The notes below the pieces were generated by a model. That model worked only from the letters and a program-made list of their open reading frames with translations, was not told the DNA's origin and searched no databases. Shown here piece after piece: positions 7,488 through 23,519 of a DNA stretch of 64,000 nucleotides (positions within the stretch are counted from its first letter, which is position 1; every line of letters starts with the position of its first letter). A program made the translations under genes and the position numbers. Source of the stretch: Syncephalis fuscata S228 (taxonomy: Eukaryota > Fungi > Zoopagomycota); assembly GCA_025786725.1 (NCBI GenBank), contig JAHLTZ010000034.1, forward strand, positions 124,001 to 188,000, read 5' to 3'.

Positions 7488-10036
7488 TTAATGCAAACTG
7501 TTTGAATCTAACACAACCACCTATAGGGTCAATTGTCACCATAATTAGTCATACTACACTATAGAAATATAAAACCTGCAGGTAATTTACCTTATTGTTT
7601 GAAAAACATGCTGCTAGCCGTGTATTATCGGCATTCCAACCCACTTCAAAAATGCCACCACTACCTTGATAAGACTTTATTAAAGTACCCTCCTAATTAG
7701 CCATAATTAAAAATAGATAGCGTTATCATTCTATTCTACATATATACGCATATATAGTAGCAATTACCTGAACGTCCCATACACCTAGTTGGAAATCAAA
7801 TGACCCACTGGCCAATAGACAGCCATCTCGACTAAAGCCTAACGAGTAGACGTTGGCGGTATGGAAGGTCAACGTATGAAGTAGATCTCCCGTATCGGCA
7901 TTCCATAAACGAACAATGAAATCAAACGACGCCCTAACATTAACGAATAAGCAAACGTTAGAATAATAAAGATAGCGGCAAAGTCAATAGTAATATACTT
8001 ACGTAGCTAGTAAACGCGCCACTCCTTGTCGATCAACCCCCACCGCTTCTTGACCTGATACGAATGGCGATAGAATGGGACGCCATTGCATCGCATAAAT
8101 AGGACCTTTTGCCACTAGTGTATGAATGGCCTGTGCACAATCCATACTCCACGTCTAATCATTTTAATTAAATATTCATTAGTACCATGACACTACACCA
8201 CACTAACAGGTGCATTCATTGACATCTACCTTGGCTGTAGCATCGTCGGCACTAGAGGCAAGTATCTGGCCGGTAGGATCCCATCGTACACAGTTAACCT
8301 CATTCTATTAAATCATATAAGTATAACCTAATAGTCTATTGATTTACTTACTTCGTGACCTTCAAATCGAATAGTAGGTTCCGATGATGTAGTACTAAAA
8401 ATACATATAGTCTTATCAATAGACGATGAAGCAAATGTTGTATCATCCCTCCAATCAAGATCTAGAACTGATTCTATAGCTCATTCTATTAACAAGGGCA
8501 TTATCGTATAAATCTATTGATGGTACCTGCATGAGCACGATAGGTGCGTATTTCTTCACCTCGAATTGTTTCCCATAGAACAATACTATGATCGGCACTG
8601 CCTGATACAAGCATAGTACCTGATTTGTTCCATTTAAGTGCAAATACTGGTCCTGTATGCTGAACCATTAAGAATCGCATAGCCCCTATTATATTATTAA
8701 TTATTAATTATTAATTATAAACCATTAAATTCAGCATCCAACTCACCTTCAAGTGTCCAAATACGCACTTGACCATCAAATGATCCAGTAGCCAAAAGTG
8801 TACCCGTTGGCTAATAGATACCATGATTACTATTAATATTGTTACTATGGTCATATTACTTACATTCCAACAAAGTGTGGTTACTTGATTCTTGCCATCA
8901 GATGGCCATGGAGGATGACTAAGTATACTGGCTGTTGGTGCAGTAGTATTTCCACTAGCTGGTAATTTCCATATCCTTGCGGTACCATCTCCTGATCTAT
9001 AATAATTACGTTTATATATTATATCATAGTATCTCTCTCTTTATTGACCTACCCCGATGCATAAATATCTGACTGTTTAGGATTCCATGCTCCTACATAC
9101 ACCTAATACTTTTATTAATAACTATAAACATTAATGATAATAACTAGTCTACCTCAGCCTCGTGACCCATTAGACTTAATACTTGACTATCAGGAATAAC
9201 TCTTGATTTATCCAGTGCTACTACAGTATCCATCATTATTTGTGTACTTTACCATATCTATTTACTTACCTGGTGTAATATCAACTGACATAGTTGCAGT
9301 GGCCGCCTCTTCATCAGCTTTAATTAAACTTGATGTTTCACGACGACCTCGACGATCTTTACCATTATTACTAGTATTATTAACACCACCTCGTCTTCCA
9401 CCACGTTGACCACTTGAAATACCACGTCGTTCATTCGACTCATTATTCTGATCCATGGATGTTCCATGTTCATTCCCATCTTCATCCATAGGCTGTACAT
9501 TGGCATCAGTATCATCTTTATCCATCCTCATCATCATAGCCGATGAAGAAGATGACGCTGTTATAGATGGTAACGATGTTTGTTGTTGTTGTTGTTGTGT
9601 TGATAATCCCGAATGATCATCATTTTGTTTATCAATAAGCTTTTTACGAGATTTAATTGAACATTCATGTGGTTGTATTAACGAGAATGGTGCATCACAC
9701 TCTATCTCTGTACCATCCTATCATTATCATAAATGAATGAATATGCATGTTATATAATACAAAATACTACTTACTTGATTAACATGTTGTTCTAAGCGCA
9801 TATACTGTAATCCTTTGTGAATAACTCGAATAAGTGCACCCGGCTGAATACTCTCCTCTAGTAGGCCGGTCTCTTCTAGCTGTGATTCGTGATGAAAGGC
9901 AAATGCCGCATGTCGAAATCCTACTCTATATTAACGATACTATATGCCACTGTAACTAGATATGCCTACCCGACTCTTCAAGATAGCGAAACACCAAGGC
10001 ATTCACCTCTTCGCTACGGATGGTCACCGTGGGCAT
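7488..10036 (-). CDS. SIF2: LisH + WD40 corepressor subunit (TBL1/Ebi/Sif2), multi-exon
   Basis: SEEVNALVFRYLEESGFRHAAFAF (LisH), PGALIRVIHKGLQY, WD repeats (LATGSFDGQVRIW, GGIFEVGWN). Confidence 0.92.
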
Positions 10037-13921: not shown

Positions 13922-15200
13922 ATGTCCCGTGTACTAAGCTTTGGTTCAATTAACATTGATGAATTCTACTTTGTTTCAAAGATTGCCGTGCCAGGTCAGA
14001 CGGTAAAGTCAACACATCGAGCAAGACTTGCTGGCGGTAAAGGTAAGCTAGCTAGTTAGTTAGTTAGTTGTAGTTGTAGTAGTAGTTACCACTATTAGCT
14101 ACTGACAACAATCTTTATAGGTGCTAATCAAGCTGTTGCACTGGCCAAGGTATAACTTGAGTAAACAACTAGTAACCTATTACTAACGGTTAATATTGTC
14201 ATCACTTAACTAGGCTGGTGCCAATGCTTATGCGGCAGGAAAGATAGGCTCTGACGGTGTATGGCTACGAGACGGGATGGAAAGGTTCGGTGTAAATGTT
14301 ACATCCATTCTAGTTGATAATAATATGGCAAGTGTTTATAGTTATGAAGAATAAAATAGTAATTTATTAACAACAAATGAATAGTCAACTGGGCGTGCAA
14401 TAATTCAATCAAGTGTAGAAGACGGTGAAAATGCCATTATTCTATTTGCCGGCACTAATGGAACAGTCGATGCTACAGAAGTTGCCGGTGTGCTTGATGG
14501 TATTATTCCAACTGAAGGTGGTCAGCTATTCAAAGCAGGCGATTGGCTATTGCTCCAGAATGAAATGAGTTCAGCTGGACATGCACTTGCTTTAGCTAAA
14601 CAGCGTGGTAATTATAGTGTTATATTAAAGTGTATTACATTATTTACATTTATAATTAATAGGCATGGTTACCGTATTCAATCCCGCACCCATGTCCGAT
14701 AATGTATTATCGGAATACGATTTGAATTTGGTAGACATTTGTATTGTTAATGAAACGGAAGCTATTCATTTATTACGTTTACTAAATGAAACAACTGCCG
14801 ATTCATTAGCAACATCTCTTTCTCCAGCAGAGTTAGTAAATAAGCTATTAGCTCGTTTTCCTACTTTGGCTGGAGTAATTGTAACGCTAGGATCAGATGG
14901 ACTTGTGGCTAAATTCCATACGACAGCAACGACAGATAATTCATCGATGGATCTTATTCAAGTAGCTGCTTGTCCAATTAGGGATAAAGTGGTCGACACC
15001 ACTGGTGCTGGTGATACGTTTATTGGCTATTTAGTGACGGGTTTGAGCGAGCATGGCTGGCGACCAGATCAACCATTGGCGCGTGAAGTGATGGAATCGG
15101 TACTGCGTCGAGCAAGTATGGCTTCGGATTGGCAATTCAAACACATGGTGCTATGGAAAGTATTCCAACTCGTGAACAAGTTAATAAGGCACTAGGATAA
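13922..15200 (+). CDS. RBK1: Ribokinase (PfkB family), multi-exon
   Basis: GSINID, GGKGANQAVALAKAG, TGRAII, LLQNE, FNPAP, VNETE, VDTTGAGDTFIG. The natural end (…HGAMESIPTREQVNKALG*) needs a 1-bp correction near 15126. Confidence 0.93.
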
Positions 15201-15254
15201 ATAAACTATTGATTGTTTATTGCTATAATAATAATAATGTAATATAATGTATCA

Positions 15255-17825
15255 TTAAATATCTAGTAAATGATACTGTTTTAACGAGGCTAGTATCTGT
15301 GCAACACATTGTAGTAGTGGTGGATGTTGGCTCGTTTTGACTGTCTCGATTAGCGAGGGAACTGCTTTAGCTTGCACTACTTGTGCAGCCGCTGCTTTAT
15401 CTAACGCTACAATGTTGCGTAGACACTCAGCACCACGATGTTGTAATCCATCGTCAGTTTCAGTGAGTAGTGCTACGAGACGCGTCACACTTTGTTTACC
15501 ATTTAAAATGGCTCGTGCTCCTTGGGGCCAGGCCGAAAGAATAGCCAATGCACCGGCAGCAGCACTTCTAGTCGCCGTATCCTCAGCATCCGCCAATGCT
15601 ACCAATAGCTTAATACGCTCAGTTGATGCCGAATAAAGTTGACCCACGGCCGGATACATCATCAAGTTGCATATAAGTTCGGTGGCCGCTCTTTGTACGA
15701 GTGTAATACGCGAAAACTGTAAAGTACTGGCTGCTTCCACTCCTTGCGTATCCACAATGCGTTGGGCTATTTGACTATCTTCAGATACCGAAGCCAGATT
15801 CGTTAGTGCTAATAAACACTCAAATTGCCGTAATGCCGGCTGTTCCTGATCGGCACATATACGCACAAAGGGCCGTACCAGCTCTTTGGCCAATTCACCG
15901 GGAAATCCAATTCTTGGATCCACTGTAATGGCTAGTTTAGCCAATGCTTGAGTAGCCAGTTCTGCATAAGGAACATAAGGCTGCGATGCTGGATCGGCAT
16001 CATTATTCACGGCCCTACCTGGTATAGGTATACGCTCGGTTGCTAATGATAACAATATACGAACACCACCCCGCTGGATTACAGTGCCGCGATGTGTTTT
16101 ATCGGTTACAATACTTAGTAAACAGCGGGTTGCTGATCCACGTACGGCTTGACTAGTATGTTTGGCCAGTTTCAATATAACCGATAACATATCTTCTTTT
16201 AATAAACGAGCTGTTCGCTGTTCCACCTGTTTATCGTCATCTAGTGGATTATCAACAATCTGTGCTGCTTCCTTGGCCTTTTTAGATGGATTTTTGGTGT
16301 AGACTGTGCCATAGCTCGTAACTTTCTTAATTGCCTCTGCTCTTCCGTTAATTCTGGTCGATAAGACATAACATTTTCTAAGATAGATATAACACCATAG
16401 CTCATACCACTATCCTTAAGCGTTGTATTATTTAATTGATTTGCAGCATTTGGTGTTACTGCTGGTACAATAAGTGTATTTAATCCTTTGAGCAGTGCCG
16501 TATCTTTGCTAATCTGTTCTTTTACCGTTGGATCTAATGAGAAATAAGTTAGGCCTTCAACGGCACGAGCGTTAATTGTTCCATCTTCACTTGGTTGGTG
16601 TAATGCTTGATAAAAAACTTGAACAAGAATAGCGCGATGAGCTGTATCTGTAGTTGACCCGTTATCCGATGGTGCATGAGCTATTTTTGTTAATGCAACG
16701 GCTGCGGCAATCCGCATTGGCACCGAATTAACTTCTCTTAACCGAGCGAGTAAATAAGAACGACATCGAACAGCAATAATAGAACGACATGCTTTATCGT
16801 CACAGGCATACGATAGTGTTTCGGTAAGTGCTAATTGAGCTTCAAATGCTTCGTAGTCGGCCAATTCAGTTGTATCGGCCAATTTCTCAGCGCCCTCCGA
16901 ACCAAGAGCAGCTATAGCCAACGATGAATCAATTTGGAATAGTGCACAAAGAACACGGAAGCCAGCCACCCGAGTAGTAATCTGTTCATGTTCTATCCAA
17001 TGTTCAATTAGCGCTGTACATTGTTTTTCCATTGCTGTACGCAAAGGATTGGCTGGTGAGTTTTTCTGTTGTGCCATTTGACTATTTTCATTTAATTTGG
17101 CCAGTAAAAGTAAAGCCAGACCTCGAACACGATTTTGGGTAGCTTCAGCACTGGCCAGTAATAATTGTTCAAATCCGTTAGACTGTACAAATGCTATAGC
17201 CAATTCAATGTTATTCGTATCTGTATAAGTTAATATTCTTAATACTGCTTGCATCGCTTCTGCCCGTATGCCTTCCGGTAGATCTGGTGCTGTACATGGC
17301 TGCAGTGCAACAAGATACTGAACTGATGTTGCCGTATCCGTGATTGAATCTTGAATAACTGTTAATAGTCGTGTAGCAATGTTCATCGATAATTCAGCCA
17401 GCTGTTGTATTTTGCAATAATTGCGCTGTTTTGATCCTTCTCGCTGCTTTTACACCGACTTATTAGTATTGGTACCGCTTGTAATAGTTGTTTGATCATA
17501 GCCACATCCACTGAAGATGCAATAACCTTTAGTAAATCTTGAATTTCATTATCCGGATTGCCAATCAATATAACTAAACACTTTGCAAACTGTATTCTAT
17601 TATCGACTGTTCCAGCAAGTTGTGCTAATAGTTCGCCACCAACGGCTGCGGTAATTGATGTTGCAATAGCGTTGGCTTGAATTAAATCAATCCGCTTTGT
17701 TTTACTTTCTTGGCCAGTAGCAATGCTAATAAAGCGATTGTAAACTCGCTCGCATCTTTGCCTGATACTGCCGTTTCTTTAAGCAGGTCAATATCACTTT
17801 TCTCCTCGTTAAGGTTGGTGTCCAT
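15255..17825 (-). CDS. SHE4: UCS-domain myosin chaperone (UNC-45/She4/Cro1), split by apparent single-base errors
   Basis: RGTVIQRGGVRILL, ATQALAKLAITVDPRIGF, QFECLLALTNLAS, QRAATELICNL, DTATRSAAAGALA; the ORF pieces join across indels near 16295, 17390 and 17690. Confidence 0.9.
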
Positions 17826-18161
17826 GTTGTAACTAGTTGAATATCGCTTATAGCTGTCCAAGTATGAAGGCACTTTTGGCGATGTTCAAGTTGAATATAC
17901 ACTACCAGTACGCCTTTATAGCTATTGTGCTTGCTTAATTCAACAAAATAAAAACAATTTACAAGGAATAGCTTGCTATCGACAGTACACGAACAACACA
18001 CTATAGACTAGAGTCAACCAGCTGTATTCTCACGTGATATACGTAATTATATTCAATGGATAATCCAGTTTTATTATTTATTGCAATAAAGCTTATTACT
18101 TGACCTGCATTCCTACGACGTAGCTGACGCCTGTGTAGCTAGTAGTGCTAGTAACGATAGT

Positions 18162-19865
18162 ATGGCTATTCATCATTTTGTAGAATACTCGCGTATTTTT
18201 AAAAAGCATAGCATTCCCTTGGGATTGCGTCCCAGTTCTATGATATGTGGTAATTCTTTGCTTCGTAAGATAAATCAAACTTTATTTGCAGCTAGATCTG
18301 TAGATACGATGATGCAGCGCAAAGTACGCACGCCTGGTTGCGACGGCGTTGGAATCAAAGACATAACAAAAATTATTGTAGGACCGGGTACGCGTGGTGC
18401 AGGCAAACGCTCGATGGAGACGCGAAGACTGGCCAAGACGAGGGAGTTACCGATCTTGCCGGTGCCTCCATTCCAGGGCCGACCGATAAAAGACTTTCAA
18501 GATCTAGTTGAAGGTATGCAAAGTGCGATAAGAACGGGTGAATATAAGGCCGACTTTTTACTGCCTCGGGGCTGGGACCAGCGCTGGTATGCGACAAGAC
18601 AGCGTAAAGCCGCCGCCGCCGCCAACGAAGCGTTTAATAATGAACAACAATTAACACAGCTCGATATTGATGAACACAACATTTTGGATCACGCTTCTGC
18701 ATTACATGAAATACAGAATAGTCAGCTTGATACAGAATTGGATGAAAATGAAATAATTGACTATGATGAACCGGATTATTATCAAAATGAGCCATTAGCT
18801 GCTCAGCATACTGCATTATTGAAAGAAAACGACGATAATAGCAAATTAGTACCAGGTTATGGCGACGAAAGTTATCAATTTAAAACAAAGTCTTGGGAGG
18901 AACGGCCTTATTTAGGTGTATCAACCATGTACGATCGCTGTATGGATCAGTATTGCTTTGATTTGATAATGGCTACACTTCCATTAGACTATTTATACGA
19001 GGCGGGTAATCATAATCTACCATTAAGATCAATACGTACAGCACATATGGCAATTGCCAAACACGTTGAAGGCATGCAAGCAGATCTTCTAGCGACCCAG
19101 TCTTTCACTTCATCTGCAGGTAGTGTAGCCAGTCCACAAATACCCATTCCTGTATTGCTGGAAATTGATATGTTACGCTTACGAGATCATGTGCCACGTG
19201 AAAAGATAATACAACTATTTACAGAATCGTCTACTTCATTTTATGGCACTACACTATCGCACAATTTAATTAATGTAATATCAAGTCTAGTACATCGTCA
19301 AGTAAAGGGCGATGTTCTACCGCGTCGATTGGGTCTGGCACCGAATAACACGCTATCAAATCTATTAAGCAATGTTTATCTTTATCCATTGGATGCGTTT
19401 CTTATTTCACGCGGCTATCGAATTGTACGCTATCTAGATCGTATTGCACTGGTACTACCCAGTATGGAGTCAGCCATACATATTAGCCGCGATATTGTAT
19501 TCTTTGCCGAGGGTGAACTCGGAGTACCGGCTTCATTGCATCGTACTCAACTGGTTGAGCCAGGTCAACGAGGCAATATACTAATGCACGATGTTGAAAT
19601 CAATCCAGCTACTGGCAAATATCATTACTATATTCCAGAACCGCAAGCAAGTCGACTTGATAAACTAGCTAAGCAGCTATTTACACTTTTACATGATGCA
19701 TCCGCTCATAGAGAATCTAAGGAAGTGGATCAATGTGTACGACAGATTCTTGGCTGTATTATTATCTACACAACTGCCGATTCAACCTTTCCATCGGTAT
19801 CACGGATTAGCAAACTTTATCGACAGGGTCGGATGACAAAGATGGCATTATTGACGAAATATTAG
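18162..19865 (+). CDS. Group II intron reverse transcriptase/maturase-like protein, catalytically degenerate, intronless
   Basis: Ordered blocks: RT0 TPGCDGVGIKDI…AIRTGEYK, RT2 RPYLGVSTMYDR, RT3 LLEIDMLRLRDHV, RT4 GLAPNNTLSNLLSNVYLYPLD, RT5 IVRYLDR (19431-19442 = YLDR), RT6 ELGVPASLHRT, X-like ILGCIIIY. Confidence 0.82.
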   Translation: MAIHHFVEYSRIFKKHSIPLGLRPSSMICGNSLLRKINQTLFAARSVDTMMQRKVRTPGCDGVGIKDITKIIVGPGTRGAGKRSMETRRLAKTRELPILPVPPFQGRPIKDFQDLVEGMQSAIRTGEYKADFLLPRGWDQRWYATRQRKAAAAANEAFNNEQQLTQLDIDEHNILDHASALHEIQNSQLDTELDENEIIDYDEPDYYQNEPLAAQHTALLKENDDNSKLVPGYGDESYQFKTKSWEERPYLGVSTMYDRCMDQYCFDLIMATLPLDYLYEAGNHNLPLRSIRTAHMAIAKHVEGMQADLLATQSFTSSAGSVASPQIPIPVLLEIDMLRLRDHVPREKIIQLFTESSTSFYGTTLSHNLINVISSLVHRQVKGDVLPRRLGLAPNNTLSNLLSNVYLYPLDAFLISRGYRIVRYLDRIALVLPSMESAIHISRDIVFFAEGELGVPASLHRTQLVEPGQRGNILMHDVEINPATGKYHYYIPEPQASRLDKLAKQLFTLLHDASAHRESKEVDQCVRQILGCIIIYTTADSTFPSVSRISKLYRQGRMTKMALLTKY

Positions 19866-19916
19866 CATGGAAGTCAATTCCTGGTACAGGATAAGATGTA
19901 ATGCAACAATTTATTG

Positions 19917-21107
19917 TTAAAGTTTTGCATATACCGGTTTGCGTTTCTCAAGACTTGATAGAACACCTTCTTTCAAATCCTAATTAATAATAATATTAGC
20001 ATAATTATCGTTGTAATAAATAGTGAATTAGCTTACATTGGATTGTAGCATAGCAGCGTTCCATGTTACAGTGTAGGCTAGACCCTCATCGACCGTATGA
20101 TCGCGCGAGTAGTTGAGTAGATGTCTAGAAAATTAAATGTGTAAGTATGGTTCTGAAGATCCATTGATCACTTACTTTGTGCCAAGTGTAGCAATAGGCG
20201 ATTTACTAGCGATAGTATTGGCCAATGCAGTAGCATGTTCTAATTATTTGATGGTGAATGTCAGTATTTTAGTCACGAATTAATTAGCTATACAATGAGG
20301 GATGCCTACCCAATAATGTCTCGCGTGTTTCAAATACACGGCTAACCAGCCCATATTTTAGTGCTTCTTCAGAAGGAACAGAACGTGCTGTTAAACAGAT
20401 CTCTCGGCCCAGCTATCGTTGCCGACGACCTTGGGTAGGCGTTGAAGGGTGCCGACATCGGCGGCCATGCCAATATCGACCTCTTTAACGTTGAAATAAG
20501 CATCTTTGCTACAGTAGCGAACATCGCAAGCAGTAGTTAAATCAACGCCGGCACCAATACACGCTCCATGAATAGCAGCAATGACAGGACGATCACATTT
20601 CTCTACTGCAGTAATGGCATTTTGCCAATCCTACATTAATAAATTAACGAATACAAGATGGACAAGAATGAATAGTGTGTCATTGATGAAATAAACAATG
20701 CCTACCGAGATGGCTTTGCGTAGATGAAAGGCGGTACGGGCTGGATCATCATGTTCTGACACTAGACTTATTGCTTCTTGCACTAGCAAATAAAACATTA
20801 ATTAAATACTTGTTAATTTGTATTCAAATAATACGTACAATCTAGACCGGCAGTAAATATTTTACCATTGGCCGATAGAACAACTGCACGCGTATCCACA
20901 TCATGCGCCACAGCGTTGAAACAATCGACAATCTTGCCAAAGTCTAGTGTAATATCGATGGTTATTTCAGGTGCCAATAGCGTAGAAACCATCGACTTAC
21001 TGGCTGTTAAAAGCGTTGAGTCGTTCAGGACGATTTAACTGAACGTGGAGGACGTGGCTGCCAATACGGCTAGCTTTAATGTGTCTCAAACCAGCGTAGA
21101 GTGACAT
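19917..21107 (-). CDS. ECH1: Delta3,5-delta2,4-dienoyl-CoA isomerase (crotonase fold) with peroxisomal PTS1 -AKL, spliced
   Basis: LHVQLNRPERLNAF, IFTAGLD, AAIHGACIGAGVDLTTACDVRY, KEVDIGMAADVGTLQRLPKVVGN; C-terminal YAKL*. Confidence 0.92.
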
Positions 21108-22646: not shown

Positions 22647-23519
22647 CTATTCATGGGCAGGTATTATTAGTAAAGCTGCCCAGAAAATTAAAGATAGAAT
22701 AAAGCCAATTGCCGTCATTCGCCATGCAATTTTACGCTGAACTGCCATGATACGTGGCTCCATAATAAGAATAAATGGCCCTTCTTCGTCCAGCCCTTCC
22801 ATGTCCCATTCTGGGCGTTCCGTAACGCCTAACGTGTATCGAATTAAGCATAGTCTGGAAAAGTACGCTGGAAGTAGGAAAAGAGAGCAAGTAATTGGTA
22901 TAAGCGGAATAATACGATACCAACGAGATATCGATATCCAAATAAAGCCACCAGCCATGAGGAGCGACAAGCATAGCGTCACTAATAGTAAAACGACACG
23001 AAGCGTACGTGCACGTGGATGAATATTATAGATCACTTCTTGCGTAAAACGTGCTGCTTCCGGTGTTAGTCGGCGGTAGGCGTCTTCCAGCGCTGGTAGA
23101 AACACATCAGGATGTGTTGTTGATGCTGCGGCTGTTTGCACCGCTTCGACAGCTATATCCGAGAACAGTGCGCCTGTCATATAGTGTGCAACGGCCGAGT
23201 CGACTTCATTTCGATAAGGGTGTTGCGACGAATGTTCTGGATGATAGGCAATGGGAGAAGCTGTTGCGCGCGGTGGATAGGCCGCGTGTAGATCACTTGT
23301 TGGCGCTGGCGACCAAATACGTTCCTCGTCCGGCAAGGTGTTATAGTAGCCGCGGTAGGTATTAAGCCAATCGTAAAAGTTAACAAGCGGGACATGTTCG
23401 TTATATCGGTGGCTAGGTGTTTGATAGCTGAGATACGCTAGAAATTCGCGATGGGATATTGGTGCCTTTGTACGGCCTTCGAGGATAGCCTGGAGGCGGT
23501 CGCGTGCGTTTTCCGCCAT
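22647..23519 (-). CDS. Fungal RGS-domain membrane protein (Rax1-like), intronless
   Basis: LQAILEGRTKAPISHREFLAYL, VNFYDW, HPYRNEV, TTHPDVF, followed by three hydrophobic segments. Confidence 0.75.
   Translation of the reverse strand: MAENARDRLQAILEGRTKAPISHREFLAYLSYQTPSHRYNEHVPLVNFYDWLNTYRGYYNTLPDEERIWSPAPTSDLHAAYPPRATASPIAYHPEHSSQHPYRNEVDSAVAHYMTGALFSDIAVEAVQTAAASTTHPDVFLPALEDAYRRLTPEAARFTQEVIYNIHPRARTLRVVLLLVTLCLSLLMAGGFIWISISRWYRIIPLIPITCSLFLLPAYFSRLCLIRYTLGVTERPEWDMEGLDEEGPFILIMEPRIMAVQRKIAWRMTAIGFILSLIFWAALLIIPAHE

Follow-up and report, generated by a model that had tools for sequence, protein, structure and literature searches.

A conserved single-copy nuclear gene for a group II intron-type reverse transcriptase-like protein with a degraded catalytic centre in Zoopagales fungi

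The window analysed here comprises 64,000 nucleotides of Syncephalis fuscata S228 (GenBank assembly GCA_025786725.1, contig JAHLTZ010000034.1, positions 124,001 to 188,000 of the forward strand). The first-pass annotation, made from the sequence alone, had described within it an open frame of 567 codons (18162–19865, +) as a catalytically dead, maturase-like gene of group II intron descent between two housekeeping genes. The frame and every motif quoted for it were recovered, as were the neighbours, a UNC45/She4 gene placed head to head with the reverse transcriptase (RT)-like gene and an ECH1-type gene placed tail to tail, the latter identified through an orthologue annotated with PF00378. 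The RT-like gene is present as one copy in the 29-Mb assembly, in which the remaining matches to TIGR04416 (group II RT/maturase) are long multi-copy frames, probably retrotransposons. The features of the locus are collected in Table 1. The window also holds an intronless gene for an RGS-like membrane protein (22647–23519, −; 290 aa, 52% identity to its orthologue on a JGI contig), which belongs to the conserved gene cluster described below.

Table 1. Features of the RT-like gene and its surroundings, in window coordinates.
Feature	Position	Strand	Remarks
Dead group II-type RT CDS	18162..19894	+	577 aa with a base restored after 19837 (RNA contig); 567 aa as assembled
Probable 5′ UTR	18113..18161	+	RNA contig starts at 18113; contigs are unstranded, no proof of the start
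Head-to-head interval with UNC45/She4, 336 bp	17826..18161	.	Comparable layout in S. pseudoplumigaleata
N-terminal helix, aa 1–30, FVEYxRI[FY], conserved, net charge +3	18162..18251	+	Modelled folded; all five copies begin alike
RT0 / N-terminal extension (PGxDG ... GxY)	18252..18560	+	Lineage-specific basic insert at ~18378–18482
Acidic insert of ~100 aa, net −16, poorly conserved, low pLDDT	18570..18899	+	Stands in for the RT1 fingers hairpin
RT2 + RT2a, the best-conserved stretch (64% identity between families)	18900..19109	+	Lineage-specific invariant Cys/His
RT3 / motif A	19152..19199	+	Asp336 only in S. fuscata; group II-invariant Phe is Arg341 (Arg/Lys in 4/4)
RT4	19332..19394	+	PQG and SP motifs gone; NxYLxPLD scaffold retained
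RT5, YLDR for YADD	19431..19442	+	Orthologues YLDR, YFDR, YFDQ; 12-residue spacer from RT4
Thumb / domain X-like three-helix bundle	19638..19894	+	Fold retained, GWxxY Trp lost, 25% identity to JGI orthologue
One-base assembly deletion shifting the last codons of the RT-like gene	19837..19838	+	RNA contig; agreement with S. plumigaleata C-terminus
Convergent ECH1-type gene, stop codon	19917..19919	−	22 bp past the corrected RT-like stop; no space for intron domains V/VI

Contigs from a public run, whose RNA nature is a guess and which give neither strand nor level, cover the whole RT-like frame unspliced (18113–19978 without a joint, the contig running on into the 3′ end of ECH1), and ECH1 contigs from that run are spliced at five introns. 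With these unstranded contigs taken as RNA, the RT-like gene is transcribed and, as had been proposed, intronless. At the divergent promoter the UNC45 transcript contig ends at 18108 and the RT-like contig begins at 18113, a break that fits two transcripts. Over the RT-like frame the comparison with the run contigs revealed five substitutions, four of them synonymous, and over 5.9 kb (window 15000–20900) the contigs carried 12 single bases that the assembly lacks, several in UNC45, with sites at 15127, 16291, 17406, 17742, 17828–17868, 17998, 19837 and 20407. UNC45, PfkB and ECH1 appear broken solely through assembly errors, and frameshift or pseudogene calls elsewhere in the S. fuscata genome need the same caution. 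The extra A after 19837 moves the stop of the RT-like gene to 19894, so that the gap to the ECH1 stop, given earlier as 51 bp, shrinks to 22 bp. The corrected C-terminus of the 577-aa protein, which is computed only and without which the homology searches were made, resembles the end of the S. plumigaleata orthologue. The standard code, the lack of intron RNA nearby and the 22 bp to the next gene uphold the view that the gene is neither an intron nor a NUMT.

The RT blocks of the protein stand overall in the order described, with the departures that the acidic insert takes the place of the RT1 hairpin and that some 35–50 residues are inserted within RT0. The D/En endonuclease domain is absent, as claimed, and the start of domain X that had been noted corresponds to a three-helix fold from which the Trp motif is lost. 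A Pfam scan of the protein returned no match to RVT_1, GIIM or Intron_maturas2, and none to the domain X profiles PF01348 and PF08388. TIGR04416 was matched with E 1e-9 and 38 bits, far under its cut-off of 300 bits, and the solved group IIC maturases of Eubacterium rectale and Roseburia intestinalis were matched with E 1e-5 by the single sequence and 2e-9 by the family profile. Without the acidic insert, the protein has a pI of 9.5.

The main structure model (pTM 0.76) was built from an alignment with added bacterial RTs, which biases the model, and shows in order the N-terminal helix, RT0 with the basic insert, the acidic insert, RT2–2a, the palm, RT7 and a three-helix thumb. Its best fold match is the GsI-IIC RT (Z 23.1 and rmsd 4.6 for 336 residues aligned within 31–557; Foldseek E 3e-13), with a DGR RT level with it (Z 22.9) and the E. 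rectale maturase (21.4), R2 (21.0) and Prp8 (17.6) behind. Refolding from Zoopagales sequences only gave a poor model (pLDDT 45), for which the GsI-IIC RT was again the top match (E 8e-7). The sequence match and the Foldseek check, which the first-pass annotation had called for, agree on a group II-type RT fold from RT0 to the thumb.

The catalytic centre has been taken apart in all four copies that cover the RT core. YADD has become Y[LF]D[RQ], and PQG, SP and the fingers Lys are lost in each of them. The Phe of motif A that is invariant in all group II references, which we take to be the steric gate, is replaced by Arg or Lys in four of four. Loss of YADD and PQG had been claimed correctly, but the S. 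fuscata copy retains two of the three catalytic Asp (D336 and D426); across the four copies the motif A position is D/G/G/A, D being found solely in S. fuscata. Near-invariant group II positions are kept at 16 of 46 sites, mostly structural ones (Gly, Leu, Asn, Asp, Arg). On sequence grounds, an acidic metal pocket turned basic would fit a non-catalytic nucleic-acid-binding scaffold. Residual nucleotidyl transfer or RT activity of a non-canonical kind is very improbable: the invariance of Tyr424 and Asp426 in the copies compared, together with the motif A Asp of the S. fuscata copy, speaks for it, but the second Asp of YADD is Arg or Gln in every copy, the motif A Asp is Ala or Gly in three, and neither PQG nor the fingers Lys nor the invariant Phe survives.

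Orthologues were found in S. plumigaleata, in S. pseudoplumigaleata (RKP24924, partial), in Thamnocephalis sphaerospora (RKP04870, partial) and on a JGI contig (577 aa); Syncephalis and Thamnocephalis represent different families within Zoopagales. Matches at E 1e-51 to 1e-103 came from Zoopagales-type sequences only, the next match had E 9e-10, and past the four orthologues those examined were bacterial-type RTs. No other eukaryote was identified among those examined, gene calls in this group being poor; word-based homologue searches returned Syncephalis sequences only, no relative emerged when metagenome, genome and viral contigs were scanned by pattern, and a Piptocephalis locus sought via the RGS-like neighbour gave the Thamnocephalis and JGI copies only. 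UNC45, PfkB, ECH1, the RGS-like gene and a fatty-acid hydroxylase gene are shared as neighbours, in subsets per locus, and the orthologue and synteny check proposed earlier therefore yielded a conserved neighbourhood in two Zoopagales families. pN is low (0.13–0.36) against a saturated pS (0.70–0.88), which indicates strong purifying selection; dN/dS has a single finite value of 0.24, dS being saturated for most pairs. Since synonymous sites are saturated and the RT core (pN 0.13–0.18) evolves as slowly as UNC45 (0.156, two Syncephalis species), selection has retained the gene. GC3 tracks the host in three genomes (0.32 in S. fuscata, 0.65 in Thamnocephalis). No group II RNA (RF00029) was detected in the genome, around the gene or around its four orthologues. 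An RT fold, syntenic orthologues, a single copy instead of dispersed TE-like ones, and expression were each found, the points on which the earlier reading had been said to turn.

The RT-like gene is very probably a long-kept, domesticated host gene. A decaying relic, NUMT, transposon remnant or contaminant is highly improbable; the three frameshifts in the S. plumigaleata copy, which was analysed in pieces joined with X, would favour such a relic, but that contig's UNC45 has frameshifts as well and, with the 12 single-base errors in 5.9 kb described above, points to assembly error, which the S. plumigaleata frameshifts look like. Synteny, purifying selection, expression, the standard code, the single copy and the lack of intron RNA weigh against it as well. 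A non-LTR retrotransposon remnant was rejected (one copy, RT2 and RT4 motifs of group II type, LINE/R2 fold matches ranking lower), and so was a mobile intron-encoded protein (no domains V/VI, no active YADD or PQG, 38 vs 300 bits with TIGR04416).

Several observations were made at the orthologous loci. The public 332-aa model of the S. plumigaleata copy (KAI8049756, L002:10001-11725) is mis-spliced around the three frameshifts with false introns, and the whole RT core is dropped. In this species UNC45 and the RT-like gene are separated (L002:6713-9690) by a gene for an aldehyde dehydrogenase and by a basic frame that carries no annotation (9480-9686, then a GT donor-like site), the latter without a match in the window or at the other three loci. 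The JGI contig (3300051380, 9 kb) carries four genes, all intronless, and lacks the fatty-acid hydroxylase intron common to Syncephalis and Thamnocephalis; it comes either from a Zoopagales-like genome poor in introns or from transcripts. The same RGS-like gene is found on a 1,080-base contig of a second JGI sample.

The first 55 or so residues had been described as rich in R/K/S/L and nearly acid-free. They do not form a clear presequence, as residues 31–62 constitute RT0 and residues 1–30 are conserved and structural-looking. The latter show 43% identity across families, near the RT0 and palm blocks (50%), and contain an invariant Glu; residues 11–20 are modelled at a pLDDT of about 90, and the helix overlays the extensions that R2, LINE-1 and Prp8 have at their N-termini. 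All five copies begin 3–6 residues ahead of FVEYxRI[FY], and no in-frame Met lies within 40 codons upstream except in the JGI copy, where one is found 33 codons upstream with two stops intervening. Cleavable presequences are usually variable and unfolded, and the hint of a presequence is weak because this N-terminus is conserved and modelled as folded. The helix is mildly amphipathic (moment 0.32–0.45) with a net charge of +3, and a non-cleaved import signal is possible. Kinship of the RI[FY][KR] helix and AxRxV to the CL-class N-terminus was considered and dropped as not significant (z 1.4, 20/200 shuffles). Elsewhere in the assembly, a succinyl-CoA ligase alpha-like gene (contig C340, 7401–10417) has a typical Arg/Ser/Thr/Ala-rich, acid-free presequence, by eye unlike the RT-like N-terminus.

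The origin of the gene was approached through the RT4–RT5 spacer, profile scores and phylogeny. The spacer of 12 residues has the length seen in class C (70/70), in other compact bacterial classes and in RT-Cas1, as against 75–82 in ML, 18–33 in CL, 39–47 in B and mostly 14 in DGR. Over shared columns the profile scores were 56–78 bits for C and 73–93 for RT-Cas1 vs 26–43 for ML and 25–28 for CL, scores that are biased in that the class C and RT-Cas1 references were picked by similarity to the query. Mitochondria hold group II classes ML and CL only (PMC4424553, Table 2). In a reference tree built without fungal organellar maturases, the family sits on a branch of 2.3–2.8 changes per site whose placement shifts with taxon sampling, and the ML, CL and C placements all survive AU tests (p 0.53, 0.49 and 0.64, respectively). 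A scan for fungal mitochondrial maturases returned bacterial ML-class introns only, from gut and other metagenomes. The RT phylogeny suggested earlier is compatible with a mitochondrial and a bacterial origin alike, and spacer and profiles lean towards compact bacterial RT classes; bacterial transfer is somewhat favoured as the putative source, and an organellar ancestor may instead have lost its spacer insert. The best non-fungal match is formed by bacterial proteins (P0005, P0037 and P0040, one from Anaerolineae) with tandem group II-like RT domains bearing YCDD and YGDD/YADD.

Compared with known systems, the closest in sequence and structure are the bacterial group IIC RTs (GsI-IIC, E. rectale, R. 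intestinalis), with which the protein shares the order of RT0, 2a, palm and thumb, the 12-residue spacer and the lack of an endonuclease. It differs from them in having only about 16–22% identity, a destroyed catalytic centre, no intron RNA, an extra N-terminal helix and a nuclear gene. The G2L4 and RT-Cas1 group II-like RTs are likewise domesticated and intron-free, have the compact spacer and are among the best matches, but those are active bacterial polymerases, and the RT-like protein carries no Cas1 or other fusion. The RT-like domain of Prp8, an inactive scaffold descended from group II RTs and domesticated by the host, matches in fold, whereas the protein described here stands alone with 577 aa and has no sequence match to Prp8 families. 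Identity with Prp8 itself was excluded by the lack of a Pfam match and by the genome's own Prp8 locus on contig C124. The rvt genes are single-copy, cellular, RT-related genes of fungi; their products form a different RT lineage, are of greater size and have an active centre, and none appeared among the homologue matches. With the type I plant proteins nMAT1 and nMAT2 the gene shares its free-standing nuclear state, descent from a group II intron protein, a degenerate RT, lack of D/En and retention under selection (PMC3927076). In contrast to these, it is fungal and apparently independent, has no clear targeting extension, and combines two large inserts with a compact bacterial-type spacer. 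Because its domain X is poorly conserved, matches neither PF01348 nor PF08388 and has lost the Trp, we did not file it as an nMAT. Reviews name nuclear maturases for plants only (PMC4424553, PMC3927076, PMC10012718), and the earlier statement that no fungal equivalent has been described stood, none being found in the literature searched, which lay mostly outside subscription titles.

Judged from its anatomy, the protein probably binds and shapes structured RNA without copying it. In the scheme we favour, a group II intron-type RT gene was very probably captured once, before the split of Syncephalis and Thamnocephalis, and shed its intron RNA and polymerase chemistry to become an ordinary single-copy host gene. 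The RT0–fingers–palm–thumb scaffold and basic surfaces are kept, which would allow RNA contact through RT0 and the palm, and the client would be at least one mitochondrial group II intron without an ORF, helped in trans to fold and splice. nMAT1 and nMAT2 act in this way on mitochondrial group II introns (PMC3927076), and the RT-like protein most plausibly works like them. As a whole chain this mitochondrial maturase role falls somewhat short of an even chance, and it is the likeliest single mechanism. Against it stand the missing substrate, in that cox1, cob, cox3, nad2/4/5 and group II domain V/VI were not found in the searchable assembly and no Zoopagales mitogenome report was found in the literature; a domain X that, although well conserved in nMAT/MatR, varies more here than any other folded part and lacks its Trp; the lack of a clear presequence; and a spacer unlike that of ML or CL, the sole mitochondrial classes. 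A lone cox1-pattern match in the assembly proved to be a chance hit within a nuclear gene. The single Zoopagomycota mitogenome tabulated (Conidiobolus) contains group I and unclassified introns only (PMC7325650). The turnover of fungal mitochondrial introns would moreover sit poorly with long conservation for an intron-specific job.

Two other readings were weighed. A domesticated dead RT could serve mitochondria in an RNA job outside group II splicing, such as group I chaperoning, rRNA or mRNA maturation, ribosome assembly or translation activation; the new invariant RT2/2a residues and weak thumb conservation fit a permanent new role, and the basic helix at the N-terminus could direct import without being cleaved, but we know of no precedent to cite for an RT scaffold in group I chaperone, rRNA, ribosome or translation roles, and this reading is rather unlikely. 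Alternatively, a bacterial RT (class C, CRISPR-associated or G2L-like) may have reached the nucleus of Zoopagales through horizontal transfer, ceased to be catalytic and been recruited by the host for new RNA work unrelated to the splicing of mitochondrial group II introns, as a non-catalytic nuclear or cytosolic RNA- or DNA-binding scaffold in a small Prp8-like convergence. The 12-residue spacer, profile scores favouring C and RT-Cas1, the lack of an organellar maturase among the best matches and of a clear presequence, and language-model features resembling Prp8 fragments at 0.91 (a lead only) argue for it. It is nonetheless a doubtful alternative, given that the C and RT-Cas1 references were query-selected, that AU tests reject no placement, that the reference set holds no fungal mitochondrial maturase and that no conserved nuclear signal was seen.

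Group II-derived nuclear genes are documented in plants (nMAT1-4) and, as Prp8, at the root of eukaryotes. A long-conserved, dead, stand-alone RT-like gene would constitute an independent case of a selfish intron protein turned host RNA factor and a tractable model of the step between maturase and Prp8, although its Zoopagales hosts are obligate parasites and hard to work with. Were bacterial transfer the true source, the gene would repeat, independently and on a small scale, the passage from maturase to Prp8. Its existence predicts that Zoopagales mitogenomes yet to be described contain group II introns dependent on a maturase, or else that there is a new RNA client. It escapes notice in public records, since it has no Pfam match and is filed as partial or mis-spliced hypothetical proteins. 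In the ESM Atlas, phage clusters of 343–404 aa named RT-like and without a Pfam family reached feature scores of 0.92–0.94, and are possibly degenerate phage RTs.
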